A DNA stretch of 64,000 nucleotides from IMGVR_UViG_3300044633_000899:1-64000; one strand, 5' to 3'. Counted from the stretch's first letter, positions 19,655 through 50,831 are shown. Notes: generated by a model from the sequence alone, not told the origin. Numbers and translations are program-made.

Positions 19655-22024
19655 ATGGATCTATTTAATCCACCAAAATTATACAATTACAACATTATGA
19701 TTAAAGATATTGACTTCTCAAAATTTGAAAATCCTACAATACAAGTTGTTTGGGAGGATTTGTCAGAGAATTTCACACAAGATAAGATAAAAAGTGTTAA
19801 ACATTATTTCCAAAAGAAATATAATACGACAAATGTAAATGTCTTAACAAAAGCCAAGATTGTTGATCAAGAAACAAATCAAACAATTGATATTTCGGTA
19901 AACATTACCGACACAAATTATCAATTGGATTTATTGAAGAATTTTATTACATCAAAGGGTTATGATAAAAAGATGGACGAAATCTTGGATTTAAATAAAT
20001 CTGTTGAGGGCAGAATGGATAATATTGACACATCACAATTCAAACAGTGGTATATTAGAAATATTGAATTTTCAAACTTTTTATCGTATGGTGAGAATCA
20101 AAAACTGGACATTGATAAGTTAAATGGTATCGTTGTTGTTGAATCAGACCCAAAAAATTTCGGTGGAAAAACTGTTTTAAGCCTGGACCTATTATTGTTT
20201 TTATTCTTTAATGAGACAACCAAAACAACAAAGGCCGAGGAGATTTTTAACCGATTTACCGATAAAGACAAAGTCTCGGTTAAGGGTGAAATCACGATTG
20301 ATGGTGAGGACTATATAATTGTACGAACGATTGAACGAAAAAAATCAAAGAAAGGTGAATGGAATGTAAAAACCGAATTGGACTTTTTCAAAAAGTTGGG
20401 TGATGGATCGTTACAAAACTTTACTGGGGAACAAAGACGAGAGACTGAAGATTTTATTAAGAACTCAATTGGAACAAAGGAAGACTTCTTAATGACAATT
20501 CTAACAACCGCAACAAACTTGGAGGACTTGTTGGAATCAAAACCAACAGCAAGAGGTCAAATTTTGTCACGATTTATGGGACTAGAATTTCTTAAAAGAA
20601 AGGAAGAGGTGGCTAAAGAAATTTATTCCGAATTTAACAAGTCAAAATTATCAAACATTTATAATTCTGAACAATTAAAAAATGATATTGAGACTTATAG
20701 ACAAGAAATAAGTGACCTTAATGATAAAATCATCACATACGATGTTGAACTAAAAACAATTGAAGAAGGTATCACCAAGGGTAAACAATATCGCGATGAT
20801 ATGTTAAACAAAAAACATAGTGACATTGACCGTGAGATTGCGATTATGAATCCAGATGAGGTTAAAAACCAAATCCAAAAGTTAACAACCGAAAAAAGTT
20901 CATTCCAGACAAAGTTAAACGAATTAAATGTTGTTGAACCAGAAACATTTTACCACGAGGACGAACACGACAATGTTAAAGATGAGTACAACAAGGTTAA
21001 TACGGAAAAAATAACACTTGATACAAAAATATCTGAAATTGAGAAATTAAAAAGTTCTGTTAAAGGTGGTATTAAATGTGAACACTGTGGAATTGAGTTA
21101 ATGAACGCTGCGATTACCCAACAAAAAATTTCAGAACTTGACGGATTTATCAATCAAAGAGATGAAAAAATTAGGTTAATGACTGATTTATCACTCAAAG
21201 AAAAAGAATTTGTTGAAACTAAAAAACAGTTTGATGAGTATGAAAAAAACAAACTAATCAAAGAAAAATACGATTTAAGTATTGAAAGTTGTGATTTAAA
21301 AATTGCTGGTTTAAATACAAAACTAGAAAAGTGGGAAGAAGTCCAGGATAAAATCCAAGGTAACAAAAAGATTGATGAGATGTTACTTAAAGCGGATATG
21401 CGTTTGGAAGAACTGGAAAGAACGAAAAGGGCGAAAACAACTGAAATTTCAACCGCTGAGTACAACATTAAATCCAAGAACGAAAAAATCGTACACAACG
21501 AAAGTATGATTGTCAAAATCAATGAAGAAGAACAAAAAGACAGTATCTACAAAATGTACTTGGAGGCCTTCGGTAAAAACGGACTATCTAAAAGTATTAT
21601 GAAAACAATGATGCCGTTGATTAATTCTGAGTTACAACGATTAATGGAAGATAGTGCATACTTCAAATTAGAGGTTAGAATTAACGATAAAAACGAAGTT
21701 GAGTTCATTATGGTTGATAATAGTACTGGTGTTGAGAAATTAATGATTAGTGGGTCTGGTTATGAGAAAACAATTGCGTCATTAGCATTACGATCGGTAT
21801 TAAGTAAAGTATGTTCACTACCAAAGCCCAACATTGTTGTGTTTGACGAGGTTTTTGGAAAGATTGCGAATGACAATTTAGAGTTGGTTGCCGAATTTTT
21901 CACAAAGATTAAAACGTATTTTGATAAGATCTTTGTTATCAGTCACAATCCATTAATTAACCAATGGGCAGATTCAACGATTAGAGTTACCAAGGAAGAC
22001 AATGTTTCACGAATTTTATCTTAA
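19655..22024 (+). CDS. Rad50/SbcC/gp46-like SMC ATPase
   Basis: FSNFLSYG, Walker A NFGGKT, a CEHC zinc hook, SGSGYEK signature and VVFDEVFG Walker B. Confidence 0.9.
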   Translation: MDLFNPPKLYNYNIMIKDIDFSKFENPTIQVVWEDLSENFTQDKIKSVKHYFQKKYNTTNVNVLTKAKIVDQETNQTIDISVNITDTNYQLDLLKNFITSKGYDKKMDEILDLNKSVEGRMDNIDTSQFKQWYIRNIEFSNFLSYGENQKLDIDKLNGIVVVESDPKNFGGKTVLSLDLLLFLFFNETTKTTKAEEIFNRFTDKDKVSVKGEITIDGEDYIIVRTIERKKSKKGEWNVKTELDFFKKLGDGSLQNFTGEQRRETEDFIKNSIGTKEDFLMTILTTATNLEDLLESKPTARGQILSRFMGLEFLKRKEEVAKEIYSEFNKSKLSNIYNSEQLKNDIETYRQEISDLNDKIITYDVELKTIEEGITKGKQYRDDMLNKKHSDIDREIAIMNPDEVKNQIQKLTTEKSSFQTKLNELNVVEPETFYHEDEHDNVKDEYNKVNTEKITLDTKISEIEKLKSSVKGGIKCEHCGIELMNAAITQQKISELDGFINQRDEKIRLMTDLSLKEKEFVETKKQFDEYEKNKLIKEKYDLSIESCDLKIAGLNTKLEKWEEVQDKIQGNKKIDEMLLKADMRLEELERTKRAKTTEISTAEYNIKSKNEKIVHNESMIVKINEEEQKDSIYKMYLEAFGKNGLSKSIMKTMMPLINSELQRLMEDSAYFKLEVRINDKNEVEFIMVDNSTGVEKLMISGSGYEKTIASLALRSVLSKVCSLPKPNIVVFDEVFGKIANDNLELVAEFFTKIKTYFDKIFVISHNPLINQWADSTIRVTKEDNVSRILS

Positions 22025-30374: not shown

Positions 30375-30785
30375 ATGAAAAACACACTTATTCTTTTTTT
30401 TATATTATTAACCAATATTTCTTTTGGTCAAATAATTGAATCTGACACAACAACACTATTAATACCAGTTAATGTTGGAAAATCTATTTTGGTTGACTTG
30501 AATGATTTAGAGCGATTGAAAAAACAAGAAGTGACGTATAAAAATGAAATACAACAACTAGAAAACAAAGTATTTAAAAACGAAAAGATAATAACTAGTT
30601 TAGAGGATAAGGATAAAAAAAACAATGAGATAATTGAATTAAAGGATTCAAAGTATAAATTAGTTGACGAGGAAAACAAACAATTACGTGATGATATTAA
30701 AAAAATCAAAACTAAGAATGTAATTATTGAAATTGTTGGTGGATCAATTATAGCCGCATTAACTTATATTATAACCTTTAAATGA
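30375..30785 (+). CDS. Secreted coiled-coil protein with a C-terminal TM helix
   Basis: Signal peptide (…TNISFG/Q), coiled coil and a C-terminal hydrophobic helix. Confidence 0.55.
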   Translation: MKNTLILFFILLTNISFGQIIESDTTTLLIPVNVGKSILVDLNDLERLKKQEVTYKNEIQQLENKVFKNEKIITSLEDKDKKNNEIIELKDSKYKLVDEENKQLRDDIKKIKTKNVIIEIVGGSIIAALTYIITFK

Positions 30786-31879
30786 TGGAAGACACTATTA
30801 AACAAGATATAACACAAATGGTTAACAGTTTAACGGCAGGAAATAATGACGCCAGAGTTGCTGCAAACAAATCCTTGAATGAAGATGGTAATGAAAGAAA
30901 TCCTGAAGACTATTTAGTTGAACCCAACGATATGGTTATTATTTTAAATCTAGTTAAAAATAAAAAACTATCTGCGAATAAAATAAAACAAAAAATTAGA
31001 GAGTATCTTAAAGATCCTAACACACTAAAAAGTTTCTTAAAATCAATAATTGACAGTAGAGGTAAAAAAGAAACAAAAGAAATGACTGGTACATCTTCAG
31101 CTGGGGGATATTCAGAACCGTTATTCACGAAAATGGAAACAAAAGAAGCGACAGGTTCATCCTCATCTGGTTCATATGAAACACCAAAGATATGGGCTAA
31201 AAGTACGAATAAAAAAGACTGGAGAGGTAAATCAAAACCACAAATACCTGGTGGTAAGTTTGTTCAGGTTAAGAAAAAATGTAAAAAGTTTCCATATTGT
31301 AATCAAGGTGATATTAACGCCCTTAATATTTTTGAAGATAAAATGTTGATAAATGCGGTAAATAAGGTTTCGCAAAAATTTGGTATAAATAAAGATATAA
31401 TCAAAGAAATAATTGAAGTTGAGATTAGTAATACAACAACCGAAAATCAATACAAACTAATTAAAGAAAATATTTCTTTAAAAGAAAAATTAAGGAACCT
31501 AATCAAAAAGATTGGTTTTGAATCTGTAACAAAGATTGTTGGATCTTTGGATAAAACTTTTGAAATCTTTGATATTAAAGAACCGATGGATTTCTTAAAC
31601 TTGTTTAACGATCTGGATGTTGTTCAGAGTGAAGACCTTGACTCTTGGACGTTATATCGTTATAAAAAAGGTCATAATTTTATTGTTTACGATAGAGAAA
31701 GTGATGAGATTTATATTAATTATTATGAAATTTGGTCGGTTTTGGAAGACAAATTTGGTCTTAAATACTCTGAAATACAGGAACTTACAAAGATATGGTT
31801 GGATGAGGTCTACAATTTAAGGGGTGTCACATCATTGATAATTGGTGTTGATGACAGTTGTATGAGGTCTACAATTTAA
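30782..31879 (+). CDS. Hypothetical protein C-terminally fused to the array-associated module (WLDEVYNLRGVT domain)
   Basis: Residues from about nt 31478 onward align with ORF 49880-50302. The stop codon lies inside repeat 2 of the array. Confidence 0.75.
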   Translation: MMEDTIKQDITQMVNSLTAGNNDARVAANKSLNEDGNERNPEDYLVEPNDMVIILNLVKNKKLSANKIKQKIREYLKDPNTLKSFLKSIIDSRGKKETKEMTGTSSAGGYSEPLFTKMETKEATGSSSSGSYETPKIWAKSTNKKDWRGKSKPQIPGGKFVQVKKKCKKFPYCNQGDINALNIFEDKMLINAVNKVSQKFGINKDIIKEIIEVEISNTTTENQYKLIKENISLKEKLRNLIKKIGFESVTKIVGSLDKTFEIFDIKEPMDFLNLFNDLDVVQSEDLDSWTLYRYKKGHNFIVYDRESDEIYINYYEIWSVLEDKFGLKYSEIQELTKIWLDEVYNLRGVTSLIIGVDDSCMRSTI

Positions 31880-31961
31880 GGGGAGTCACACCCTTTCATA
31901 TAACTTATGCAATTGACTTAGAGTAGTTGGATGAGGTCTACAATTTAAGATAGTTCATACT
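31798..31961 (+). CRISPR. CRISPR-like mini-array 1 (three 36-nt repeats, two unique spacers of 23 and 33 nt)
   Basis: Repeats at 31798, 31857 and 31926 (consensus GTTGGATGAGGTCTACAATTTAAGGGGAGTCACACC), with the distal copy degenerate. The repeats are certain, the CRISPR function is not. Confidence 0.5.
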
Positions 31962-34728: not shown

Positions 34729-35087
34729 CAAATTTAGCGTTAATAACAGATGGTATACAAAAATTATTTCCAACAGGATTAGGTGTTTTGGTTTACGAAT
34801 TAAACGTGTATGATTTTTATAATATCAAAAAACAATTTCCAGAAATAGACGAAAACAAAAATCGTTTTAAAATTGATATTTCAGGTGTTGAAGTTGTTTT
34901 CATACTTAAAGGTAGTCTTGAAAAAGAACTAACTAAACTAGAAGAACAAACTAAACTAGAAGAACAAACTAAACTAGAAGAACAAACTAAACTAGAAGAA
35001 GAAACATCAACGGAAGTTTTAGAACCAGTAATTAATGACTCATTTTTAAATAAACTTTTAAAATTATTCAGTAAAAAACGTAGTTGA
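34692..35087 (+). CDS. Hypothetical protein with (LEEQTK)n repeat
   Basis: Translation shows TKLEEQ repeated four times. Confidence 0.6.
   Translation: METVQESNYGDLTNLALITDGIQKLFPTGLGVLVYELNVYDFYNIKKQFPEIDENKNRFKIDISGVEVVFILKGSLEKELTKLEEQTKLEEQTKLEEQTKLEEETSTEVLEPVINDSFLNKLLKLFSKKRS
34932..35003 (+). repeat. 18-bp tandem repeat x4 (ACTAAACTAGAAGAACAA)
   Basis: Three exact copies plus one with a single mismatch. Confidence 0.95.
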
Positions 35088-49221: not shown

Positions 49222-49875
49222 ATGAACTTTAAAAAAATATTAACAACAGGAAAAGTATTCATAACATCGGATACACATTACGGACACAAAAATATTGTAC
49301 GAGGTGTAACAAACTGGAGAACCCAGGATGGTGAAATACCTATTGATTCAGTTAGGGATTTTGGAACAATTGATGAAATGAATGAAAGATTGGTTTATGG
49401 TATTAACAATATGGTTGGTCAAGACGACACACTAATAATGTTGGGTGATGTTTCATTTGGGGGATTTGATAATATTGGAATTTTTCTTGATAGATTGGTA
49501 TGTCAAAACATTCATCTTATATTAGGAAATCACGATATGCACATCCAGAACAATCGTGGAAACATACAGAGTAGATTTTTAAGTGTTAATCACTATTTGG
49601 AAGTGAATATTGAAGGAAAAAATTTTGTGTTATGTCATTATCCATTACAAAGTTGGCATGGACTAAATAAAGGCGTTATCCAACTTCACGGGCATGTACA
49701 CCTTAGTCCAGACAAAAAATTTGGTAAAGGTAAAAAAATGGACGTTGGTATGGACGGTAATAACTTAAACCCATATAGTATTGGTGAAATCATTAAGATT
49801 ATGGATAAAAGACCAATATTTTCAGATATGGATAATGATCATCATCTGGATGATTTAGTTGGTATTATTGGTTAA
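49222..49875 (+). CDS. Calcineurin-like metallophosphoesterase
   Basis: SDTH, LGD, GNHD and HGHVH motifs. Confidence 0.9.
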   Translation: MNFKKILTTGKVFITSDTHYGHKNIVRGVTNWRTQDGEIPIDSVRDFGTIDEMNERLVYGINNMVGQDDTLIMLGDVSFGGFDNIGIFLDRLVCQNIHLILGNHDMHIQNNRGNIQSRFLSVNHYLEVNIEGKNFVLCHYPLQSWHGLNKGVIQLHGHVHLSPDKKFGKGKKMDVGMDGNNLNPYSIGEIIKIMDKRPIFSDMDNDHHLDDLVGIIG

Positions 49876-49879
49876 TAAT

Positions 49880-50302
49880 ATGGAAGACAAAATAAAAGAA
49901 AAATTAAAGGATTTAATCAAAAATGTTGGATTTAAATCAACGATAAGAGTTGTCGGATCCTTGGATAAAACATTTGAGATCTTTGATATTAAAGAACCAA
50001 TGGATTTCTTAAATTTATTTAATGATTTGGAATCGGTTCAGAGTGAAGAACGTGAAGATTGGACGTTATATCGTTATAAAAAAGGACATAATTTTATAAT
50101 TTACAATAGAAAAAATGATTATGTTCATATCAATTATGATGAAATTTGGTCAGTTTTAGAAGACAATTTTGGACTTAACTACTCTGAAACACAAGAACTT
50201 ACACAGAGATGGTTGGATGAGGTCTACAATTTAAGGGGAGTCACACCATATATTCAACTTTTTGAAAATCAGCAATATAGTTGGATGAGGTCTACAATTT
50301 AA
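49880..50302 (+). CDS. Stand-alone array-associated protein (WLDEVYNLRGVT domain)
   Basis: Paralog of the C-terminal module of 30782-31879. Its 3' end comprises repeat 1, spacer 1 and part of repeat 2. Confidence 0.8.
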   Translation: MEDKIKEKLKDLIKNVGFKSTIRVVGSLDKTFEIFDIKEPMDFLNLFNDLESVQSEEREDWTLYRYKKGHNFIIYNRKNDYVHINYDEIWSVLEDNFGLNYSETQELTQRWLDEVYNLRGVTPYIQLFENQQYSWMRSTI

Positions 50303-50365
50303 GGGGAGTCATACCAACACCCCCTTCCAACTTTTAGTAAACATTGGATGATATCAACAATTTAA
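50212..50365 (+). CRISPR. CRISPR-like mini-array 2 (two full 36-nt repeats, one degenerate partial repeat, spacers of 32 and 27 nt)
   Basis: Repeats at 50212 and 50280, and a degenerate ATTGGATGATATCAACAATTTAA at 50343. Same repeat as array 1 but different spacers. Confidence 0.5.
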
Positions 50366-50378
50366 TATATTTATTTTT

Positions 50379-50831
50379 ATGAAGATCATAATAACCGAAG
50401 AACAATATAACCTACTACAAGATATTGATGATGGGTTAATAACCTACTCAAGTATATTTAAACCTAAGATTAAGATTTTAGTTATATTTAAAAATAATGA
50501 AAATTACGAAAATCTTATAACGATATTCAATGAGTATGGTTATGGTTTTTATGTACCAAACCAAGAATTAATAATTATTAATGGTGAAATATTTTTAAAT
50601 TCTAACGATTTAACAATGGACGATTTAAGGTTTATTGAGGCTCACGAAATTAGTCACTTACTTTTAAATCACGATGGACCAAGATCCGAGAAAGACGAAA
50701 TGGATGCCGACATAGGTGCGTACATATTATTAACAAGACATAATATTTCAACAGAACGATTAGTGGATGAATTTGAATTTAGACATAATGTTAAATTTGA
50801 TGAAAAACTAACTAAAAATTTTGATATTTAA
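50379..50831 (+). CDS. HExxH metallopeptidase-like protein (IrrE/ImmA-like)
   Basis: AHEISHLLL...E..AD motif. MKIIITEEQ N-terminus after TATTTAT (50368-50374). Confidence 0.6.
   Translation: MKIIITEEQYNLLQDIDDGLITYSSIFKPKIKILVIFKNNENYENLITIFNEYGYGFYVPNQELIIINGEIFLNSNDLTMDDLRFIEAHEISHLLLNHDGPRSEKDEMDADIGAYILLTRHNISTERLVDEFEFRHNVKFDEKLTKNFDI

Follow-up and report, generated by a model that had tools for sequence, protein, structure and literature searches.

A family of protein-coding genes in a jumbo phage was found to end in a 36-nt sequence that is at the same time the first repeat of a short array of CRISPR type, and the spacers that follow this gene end avoid stop codons in the reading frame which the repeat sets. 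About ten such arrays are present in a single genome, and their repeats vary together with the ends of the genes to which they are attached. We consider it fairly probable (roughly 0.6) that these are gene-anchored CRISPR-type arrays, generated by integration of the CRISPR-adaptation type at the end of the gene and carried out by the adaptation machinery of the host.

The window, by which the whole analysed stretch of 64,000 nucleotides is meant, covers the initial 64 kb of a virus record of 296,330 bp, which is rated complete and has a G+C content of 30%. The record represents a T4-like jumbo myovirus with a gp20-type portal containing an intein, a tail sheath, a family B polymerase and a ribonucleotide reductase, and Pfam searches with ten large ORFs of the phage returned mostly structural and replication proteins. 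The intein splicing domain is located in the T4-type portal gene, a 1031-aa ORF at genome positions 162,873-165,968, and uncommon phage cargo is represented by an 899-aa leucine-rich-repeat protein (genome 214,075-216,774) and a ClpB-like double AAA+ ATPase (genome 149,152-151,404). The sequencing runs that bear the locus are lake-water metagenomes, and the sole hint at a host is one repeat-bearing phage contig that was binned into a Flavobacterium MAG. The protein bS21, looked for as a link to the lake Bacteroidetes jumbo phages described in PMC9723584, is absent from the phage. A BLAST search of the locus and two arrays against 50,697 phage records gave no match, and a scan for promoters and terminators gave no signal beyond that of shuffled sequences. 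The strongest tandem repeat of the window, an 18-nt unit present in 4.6 copies with 96% matches (34924-35005, score 150), has no relation to the 36-nt repeat.

The gene family and its arrays in the phage genome

The repeat, GTTGGATGAGGTCTACAATTTAAGGGGAGTCACACC, lies at 50212-50247, exactly where the first-pass annotation of the window had placed it, and, when read in frame with the ORF beginning at 49880, encodes LDEVYNLRGVTP. Additional copies with at most three mismatches occur at 50280-50315, 31798-31833 and 31857-31892, with 0 matches in 100 shuffles, and both loci of the window include a third, degenerate copy (at 50343 and 31926, respectively) of which only the first ~23 nt are kept. The copies thereby form two clusters of three in the window, at 50212-50378 (array B) and 31798-31961 (array A), and the whole genome contains about ten clusters of 2-3 repeat copies, distributed over both strands.

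Array B is attached to family gene copy B (49880-50302, plus strand), which consists of the stand-alone domain. Its ORF runs through repeat 1 (50212-50247, the final 12 codons of the gene) and the 32-nt spacer 1 (50248-50279), and ends at a TAA within repeat 2 (50280-50315, one mismatch), giving a product that terminates in GVTPYIQLFENQQYSWMRSTI. Spacer 1, whose IMG/VR match is its own array only, is the gene-proximal unit and the one acquired last, and is translated as the tail of the protein. Spacer 2 (50316-50342, 27 nt) is an old distal unit, and the degenerate terminal repeat (50343-50378) adjoins the ATG of the next gene (50379-50831), the product of which is weakly similar to metallopeptidases of the M78/IrrE-like and M48 families. 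Upstream of copy B, a calcineurin-like phosphoesterase is encoded at 49222-49875. In a contig from an RNA library (run X23), nt 23 of repeat 1 is joined straight to AGACAT and the downstream sequence (window positions 50234 and 50359); this contig represents an allele without spacers, whose gene would terminate in LDEVYNLKT followed by a stop.

Array A, also on the plus strand, follows family gene copy A (30782-31879), a 365-aa ORF whose conserved domain is confined to the last ~118 aa. Repeat 1 (31798-31833) again constitutes the final 12 codons of the gene, with two mismatches to the commonest repeat, and is followed by an unusually short spacer 1 of 23 nt (31834-31856), by repeat 2 (31857-31892, one mismatch), by spacer 2 of 33 nt (31893-31925), the 25-nt core of which has no match in IMG/VR, and by a terminal repeat (31926-31961) with nt 1-23 intact and the final 13 nt degenerate. 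The ORF of copy A likewise reads repeat 1 and spacer 1 and stops within repeat 2, after GVTSLIIGVDDSCMRSTI. The range of 23-33 nt previously given for the spacers was confirmed: the two spacers of array B measure 32 and 27 nt, and those of array A 23 and 33 nt. Spacer 1 of array A recurs exactly at genome positions ~239,245-239,267 (minus strand), behind a paralogue near 239.3 kb whose own gene-end repeat is decayed and carries a 6-nt deletion. The presence of the same 23-nt spacer at two paralogous loci implies that gene-plus-array units have been duplicated as wholes within the genome and that spacer 1 of array A is old.

When the ORF from 49880 was used as a tblastn query, 14 paralogues of the family were identified in the 296-kb genome, about ten of them with arrays, and the first repeat of every cluster in the genome consists of the final 12 codons (LDEVYNLRGVTP) of one paralogue. 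The earlier proposal that the repeat doubles as coding sequence is correct for the first repeat of each array, but not for the other repeats. The three most diverged paralogues of the genome have WLxxxYxL-like ends and ordinary tails, with no repeats downstream. Six family paralogues form a tandem cluster on the minus strand at genome 238.8-242.7 kb; since this cluster spans an intact array, a decayed repeat and the absence of any repeat, it can be regarded as a natural series for array gain and loss.

The family as a whole comprises 390 clusters at 50% identity, all of them without a name, and the protein has no match in Pfam, PADLOC or PHROGs. Third codon positions vary more than amino acids, which identifies the family as a real coding gene, and contigs from RNA libraries cover it. 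For the 123-aa core of copy B, AlphaFold predicts (pLDDT 97) four helices, a four-stranded sheet and two further helices, and in this model the repeat codes for the final stretch of the last helix and a short tail. Foldseek searches against the PDB and AFDB clusters returned uncharacterised relatives only, and the search with larger members of the family showed nothing beyond unrelated N-terminal fusions.

Polarised turnover and the reading frame of the spacers

The same architecture recurs in related contigs, of which 37 were retrieved from IMG/VR with the repeat core and 47 with a looser core, with 49 more coming from metagenome contigs. Across both sources, 91 unique arrays of 2-6 repeats each were recovered, most of which hold just one or two spacers; among 107 unique spacers from this lineage, length ranges over 27-34 nt with a mode of 31. 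Nearly all of the metagenomic clusters (64 of 68) are located directly 3' of an in-frame ORF with a terminal W, and the number of repeats does not exceed six in any of them. The terminal repeat of 74 of the 91 arrays keeps nt 1-23 intact (mean of 1.7 mismatches) but is degenerate over nt 24-36, which are near random, with 8.3 of these 13 positions mismatched.

Comparison between closely related loci reveals a turnover that is polarised towards the gene. For instance, the flanks of L045 and L011 are 100% identical to those of L014 (400 nt upstream, 300 nt downstream) and the four distal spacers are identical as well, whereas the first spacer is unrelated (33 vs. 31 nt). L043 has the terminal repeat and the distal 27-nt spacer in common with array B of the window, the latter with two changes, but carries three different proximal spacers where array B has one; L018 and L020 have their distal spacers in common and differ at the gene-proximal end; and one and the same spacer occupies position 2 in L041 and position 1 in P0121. 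The repeat itself follows the gene: 46 of 71 deviations in repeat 1 are common to repeat 2, which is what copying of new repeats from the gene end should produce, and diverged lineages repeat their own gene end as a 36-nt unit (encoding, e.g., LDETYNLGGLTP or VDEAYKLRGFTT), with 30-31-nt spacers and a decayed last copy. The suggestion of the first-pass annotation that a captured, decayed repeat is involved had to be abandoned, because spacers turn over between otherwise identical genomes and the repeat co-evolves with the gene end. The general hallmarks of a CRISPR array found here are thus unique spacers of comparable size that alternate with direct repeats of uniform length, polarised gain at one end, shared old spacers at the distal end and a degenerate terminal repeat. 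Logan contigs break at the repeats and therefore give no information on spacer heterogeneity at a locus. In five related contigs, a widespread spacer is made up of GATGAGG-like motifs similar to the 5' portion of the repeat; it encodes the acidic tail DEVDEEDDEL and may have originated by slippage rather than by capture.

The ORF usually passes through repeat 1 and spacer 1 and then stops in repeat 2, at GTT GGA TGA when the spacer has 31 nt and at ...ATT TAA when it has 29 or 32 nt. Among the first 58 spacers, 46 were without a stop in the frame of the preceding repeat, as compared with about half in the controls, i.e. other frames, shuffles and random genome fragments. This result was replicated with 49 fresh metagenome spacers, 43 of which were open, with stop trinucleotides distributed over the phases as 51/6/22 (P=7e-8). 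When both sets are combined, 89 of 107 spacers are open in the repeat frame, vs. 45 and 64 in the other two frames, and the stop trinucleotides by phase amount to 98/22/58 (P=1.5e-10), including a mild further asymmetry in the form of a slight excess of off-frame stops in one of the two other phases. Spacers of frame-shifting length are open in 69 of 74 cases, those of in-frame length in 20 of 33. Given the near absence of stops from the frame-shifting spacers, the ORF ends at the TGA (nt 7-9) or the TAA (nt 21-23) of the next repeat.

Since spacers avoid in-frame stops, the newest spacer is translated as a C-terminal tail, and the depletion shows directly that selection sees it as protein. 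That stops are depleted in first and later spacers alike fits the notion that later units are former first units. The codon usage of the spacers is not gene-like, and the signal thus reflects the filtering out of stops and not a derivation from coding sequence in phase. For this reason, the possibility that spacers are in-phase pieces of coding sequence was ruled out. Translation of the whole array by frameshifting was ruled out as well, on the basis of spacers with in-frame stops in one of the related arrays (L021). The encoded tails have no common motif, and stop depletion was not seen in 32 spacers of diverged lineages, which are mostly 30 nt long.

Form of the repeat, cas genes, host arrays and protospacers

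A resemblance of the repeat to type VI-B (Cas13b) direct repeats had been pointed out in the first-pass annotation on the strength of an alignment with a PspCas13b repeat. Direct repeats of type VI-B are characterised by a length of 36 nt, pairing between a 5' GTTG and a 3' CAAC, and an internal loop rich in U. The PspCas13b sequence used in the annotation is found verbatim in two papers, and recomputation of the ungapped alignment gave the same count of 21 identical positions out of 36. Such a match, which the annotation held should surpass that of other sequences encoding the same peptide, exceeds synonymous recodings both with uniform codons (mean 15.7, P=0.002) and with the codon usage of the phage (mean 17.4, P=0.01), as well as mononucleotide shuffles (mean 9.5, P=6e-5). 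A Flavobacterium array (G066) with 29-30-nt spacers, classed by the form of its repeat only (36 nt, GTTG...ACAAC), was used for a further comparison: its repeat is identical to the phage repeat at 19 of 36 positions (P=1e-4) and to the PspCas13b repeat at 22 of 36, meaning that the phage repeat is about as close to members of this form as these are to each other. Moreover, the repeat makes use of codons that are rare in the phage (GTC, 5% of Val; AGG, 12% of Arg; TTG, 14% of Leu), an indication that the nucleotide sequence as such is constrained.

The main repeat variant ends in CACC, and the GTTG/CAAC terminal pairing is broken, in agreement with what had been noted before, although some related arrays end in CACAAC. 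Folding of the repeat RNA, proposed at the time as a check, gave a weak structure, with a minimum free energy of -2.1 kcal/mol for the main variant (weaker than 198 of 200 shuffles) and of -4.7 for the CACAAC variant, and an Rfam search of three array loci at E<=10 returned no CRISPR-DR or other relevant family. The polarity of the arrays, with the variable end and the presumed transcription on the GTTG side, is the same as in the VI-B arrays of PMC8092290. However, the II-C repeats of F. columnare are also 36 bp long with a GTTGT end, and the VI-B system of this species borrows the II-C Cas1-Cas2 (PMC8092290). In a direct comparison with II-C, the sizes of the repeat (36 nt) and of the spacers (~30 nt) fit, and the 5' 23 nt are kept in the terminal repeat; a tracrRNA-type anti-repeat was not found in the phage, where all approximate matches to the repeat core are in the sense of the family genes. 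Because II-C repeats have the same length and end motif, the form of the repeat fits the Bacteroidota II-C/VI-B class and membership in VI-B cannot be claimed. Of the original assignment, the VI-B-like form (36 nt, GTTG start, 21 of 36 positions) is retained, but a specific tie to Cas13b is not.

Cas1, Cas2 and RT profiles gave no match in the 296-kb phage genome, Cas1 was not found in four related records (a 281-kb relative that is 96% complete and three fragments), and PADLOC gave no match for seven large ORFs of unknown function and both family proteins. On the side of the host, a degenerate 20-nt repeat core was searched in one genome each of 185,579 species and matched only in the phage contig binned into the Flavobacterium MAG. 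A 23-position consensus, composed of the positions conserved across three repeat variants, found no array in 400 Flavobacterium genomes at up to three mismatches, the only match being a lone one attributable to chance, and in metagenome contigs the repeat occurs only behind the phage gene, with no array of host type. Regarding protospacers, 139 spacers had no match in 1.37 Mb of related phage DNA, comprising the phage's own genome, two other large genomes of the group and ~100 loci. Seven spacer cores, six searched against IMG/VR and one against metagenome contigs, matched their own arrays or nothing; as these scans of collections were confined to exact matches, they constitute weak negative evidence for protospacers. 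Thus, two general attributes of CRISPR arrays, namely an association with cas genes or a host repeat and spacer matches to foreign elements, were not found in the data searched. The first 20 nt of one spacer of L043 are present exactly at 19913-19932 of the window, in an SbcC-like gene (19655-22024), and the remainder diverges; this match, with a rough P of 0.01-0.05, is suggestive only and may reflect either a protospacer that has diverged in a relative or chance.

Origin and possible roles of the arrays

The explanation favoured here assigns the role of leader-proximal repeat to the last 36 nt of the gene, i.e. the part encoding LDEVYNLRGVTP at the end of the last helix plus the short tail. 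Integration would duplicate this gene end and insert ~30-31 nt of foreign DNA beside the gene, with the same topology as spacer integration by Cas1-Cas2. The exact duplication of 36 nt, the 29-32-nt size of the inserts, the gain at one end and the decaying distal repeat together are the signature of integration of the Cas1-Cas2 type and, given that no cas1, cas2 or RT is detectable in the phage, we infer that the adaptation machinery of the host acts as the integrator. This machinery would probably belong to a system of II-C/VI-B type from Bacteroidota, in which the repeats are 36 nt long (GTTG...CA(A/C)C) and the spacers have ~30 nt. The newest spacer would then join the ORF and provide a C-terminal tail of 10-12 residues, usually ending at the stop in repeat 2, while insertions with an in-frame stop would be selected against, and older units would be pushed into the 3' untranslated region, where the last repeat decays. 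As to the purpose of the arrays, their RNA may feed or jam a host Cas effector, by serving as guide or decoy, the protein tail may be what matters, or the arrays may be neutral by-products, removed only where they harm the protein; these possibilities are mutually compatible.

Other explanations differ in what they take to be under selection and in which enzyme they invoke. One of them, which we regard as rather doubtful, holds that the arrays are of Cas13b type, their transcripts being processed and loaded by the Cas13b of the host to act as guides against competitors or as Racr-like decoys, with spacer gain as a side effect of mimicking a host array. The dimensions agree with this (36 nt, GTTG start, CACA(A/C)C end, ~30-nt spacers), as do the 21 of 36 positions matching PspCas13b, the 19 of 36 matching the Flavobacterium array and a polarity like that of the VI-B arrays of PMC8092290, but length and end motif are found equally in the Flavobacterium II-C repeats described in the same study, the main variant has a broken terminal pairing and folds weakly. 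With about ten expressed copies in each genome, a decoy would be plausible, and RNA-library contigs cover the gene family, although such coverage is no demonstration of a small RNA, whereas the scans of species, of Flavobacterium genomes and of metagenomes found no matching host repeat, no targets were found in the 1.37 Mb of related phage DNA, and neither a guide nor a decoy role predicts that spacers avoid stop codons. This avoidance speaks for another reading, in which the product under selection is the protein and integration is used or tolerated for the random C-terminal tails of 10-12 residues that it supplies, leaving the downstream units as spent tails. We consider this possible but not likely. 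Stops are depleted only in the frame set by the repeat, a result that was replicated, and 69 of 74 spacers of frame-shifting length are open, but this is true of only 20 of 33 spacers of in-frame length, and the constraint is absent in the diverged lineages sampled. That most arrays have one or two spacers, that the family has grown to 14 copies per genome, that tails differ between otherwise identical genomes and that no targets at the RNA level were found in the 1.37 Mb of related phage DNA are also in keeping with a role of the tails; nevertheless, the codon usage of the spacers is not protein-like, the tails are without a common motif, searches of Pfam, PADLOC, PHROGs and folds provide the family protein with no function, and a need for a minimum tail length alone would yield the same signal without any diversifying function. 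Somewhat less probable still is the stronger proposition that spacer integration serves as a generator of protein diversity, providing random C-terminal peptides to a 14-member family with the downstream array as a record of fossil tails; the integrase would in that case be either a hijacked Cas1-Cas2 of the host or an unrecognised phage enzyme.

Cas proteins may also be dispensed with altogether, if the arrays are the work of a phage recombinase or of recombination at the 36-nt homologies between paralogues or co-infecting relatives, an option that we judge improbable. It would accommodate the failure of genome and metagenome scans to find a host repeat, the fact that repeats track the gene end of each lineage, the one-for-one swap of the first spacer between L045 and L014, the occurrence of the 23-nt unit at two paralogous loci and the existence of a spacer-less allele. 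However, more than 130 unrelated spacers cannot come from the recombination of existing units, the narrow insert size of 29-32 nt, the exact 36-nt duplication and the gain at one end are the signature of Cas1-Cas2-type integration, and no candidate for the integrase was identified. Finally, an ordinary coding tandem repeat, a chance similarity or an assembly artefact is contradicted by the data and deserves next to no credence: although the first repeat does code for protein and a reading frame continues through a few of the arrays whose spacers have 30 nt, the modal spacer of 31 nt breaks the frame, the spacers are unrelated in sequence, and the architecture is present in ~100 independent contigs from many samples, with 0 matches in shuffles.

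Viral mini-arrays that lack cas genes are known from archaeal portogloboviruses, cyanophage N-1 and others, and carry repeats identical to those of the host and spacers that mostly match related viruses (PMC11656645). The phage arrays resemble them in their 1-5 spacers, in the absence of detectable cas1/cas2, in their CRISPR-typical sizes and in a spacer content that varies among relatives. They differ in that a host array with the repeat was not found, that no spacer has a match in 1.37 Mb of related phage DNA, and that ~ten arrays per genome are fused to the 3' ends of paralogues, with spacers under a reading-frame constraint. To our knowledge, none of the known phage mini-arrays has stop-free spacers. 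With the VI-B and II-C systems of Flavobacteriia (PMC8092290), the phage arrays have in common the 36-nt repeats with GTTG(T/G) at one end and a CAAC-like sequence at the other, the ~30-nt spacers and an acquisition that is polarised at the leader end, from which the transcription of VI-B arrays proceeds into the array (PMC8092290). Unlike these systems, they have no non-coding AT-rich leader, because the "leader" is coding sequence, no cas1/cas2 was found in the phage by profile search and no cas13b or cas9 was recognised close to the arrays or at other sites of its genome, the main variant ends in CACC, and there are never more than six repeats. RNA anti-CRISPRs (Racrs) and solitary repeat units are likewise known in phages; Racrs mimic the repeat of the host and need no spacers (PMC10651486). 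The repeat-like sequences described here are similar in that they might be transcribed and might bind Cas proteins of the host, and the array RNA may act as a decoy, but, in contrast to Racrs, they gain units in a polarised manner, their first copy is coding and a host counterpart was not found.

Two further systems offer partial parallels. Off-target integration by Cas1-Cas2 giving rise to "neo-CRISPR" loci was reportedly observed by Nivala et al. in 2018, as a rare event in bacterial chromosomes under overexpression. There, as here, integration at a repeat-like site outside a canonical array duplicates the site and seeds a new array, whereas in the present case it would belong stably to one phage gene family throughout a lineage, with the insert under selection. 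Diversity-generating retroelements consist of a reverse transcriptase and a pair of template and variable repeats with adenine-specific differences. The C-terminal variability of a phage protein and a gene-end repeat located downstream are reminiscent of such elements, but the genome has no RVT_1 match, there is no adenine-specific template repeat and the variation takes the form of inserted foreign sequence. A diversity-generating retroelement was thus ruled out, given the lack of an RVT_1 match, the near-identity of the repeats and the restriction of the variation to the inserted spacers.

In the literature, no account was found of the coding end of a multi-copy gene acting as the first repeat of many arrays per genome, with no host counterpart and with a frame constraint on the spacers. 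As far as could be found, therefore, what is new is the use of a coding gene end as the leader-proximal repeat, the presence of ~ten arrays on paralogues and the replicated frame constraint. The arrays demonstrate that CRISPR-like repeats are able to hide within annotated ORFs, and they would mislead host-prediction pipelines that take any array as bacterial. If the Cas1-Cas2 of the host writes at these sites, this would represent natural, heritable CRISPR adaptation inside a jumbo phage of lytic type, and would offer a handle on what the integrase needs from leader and repeat. If, on the other hand, the translated tails are the purpose of the arrays, they would constitute a new route of protein diversification.
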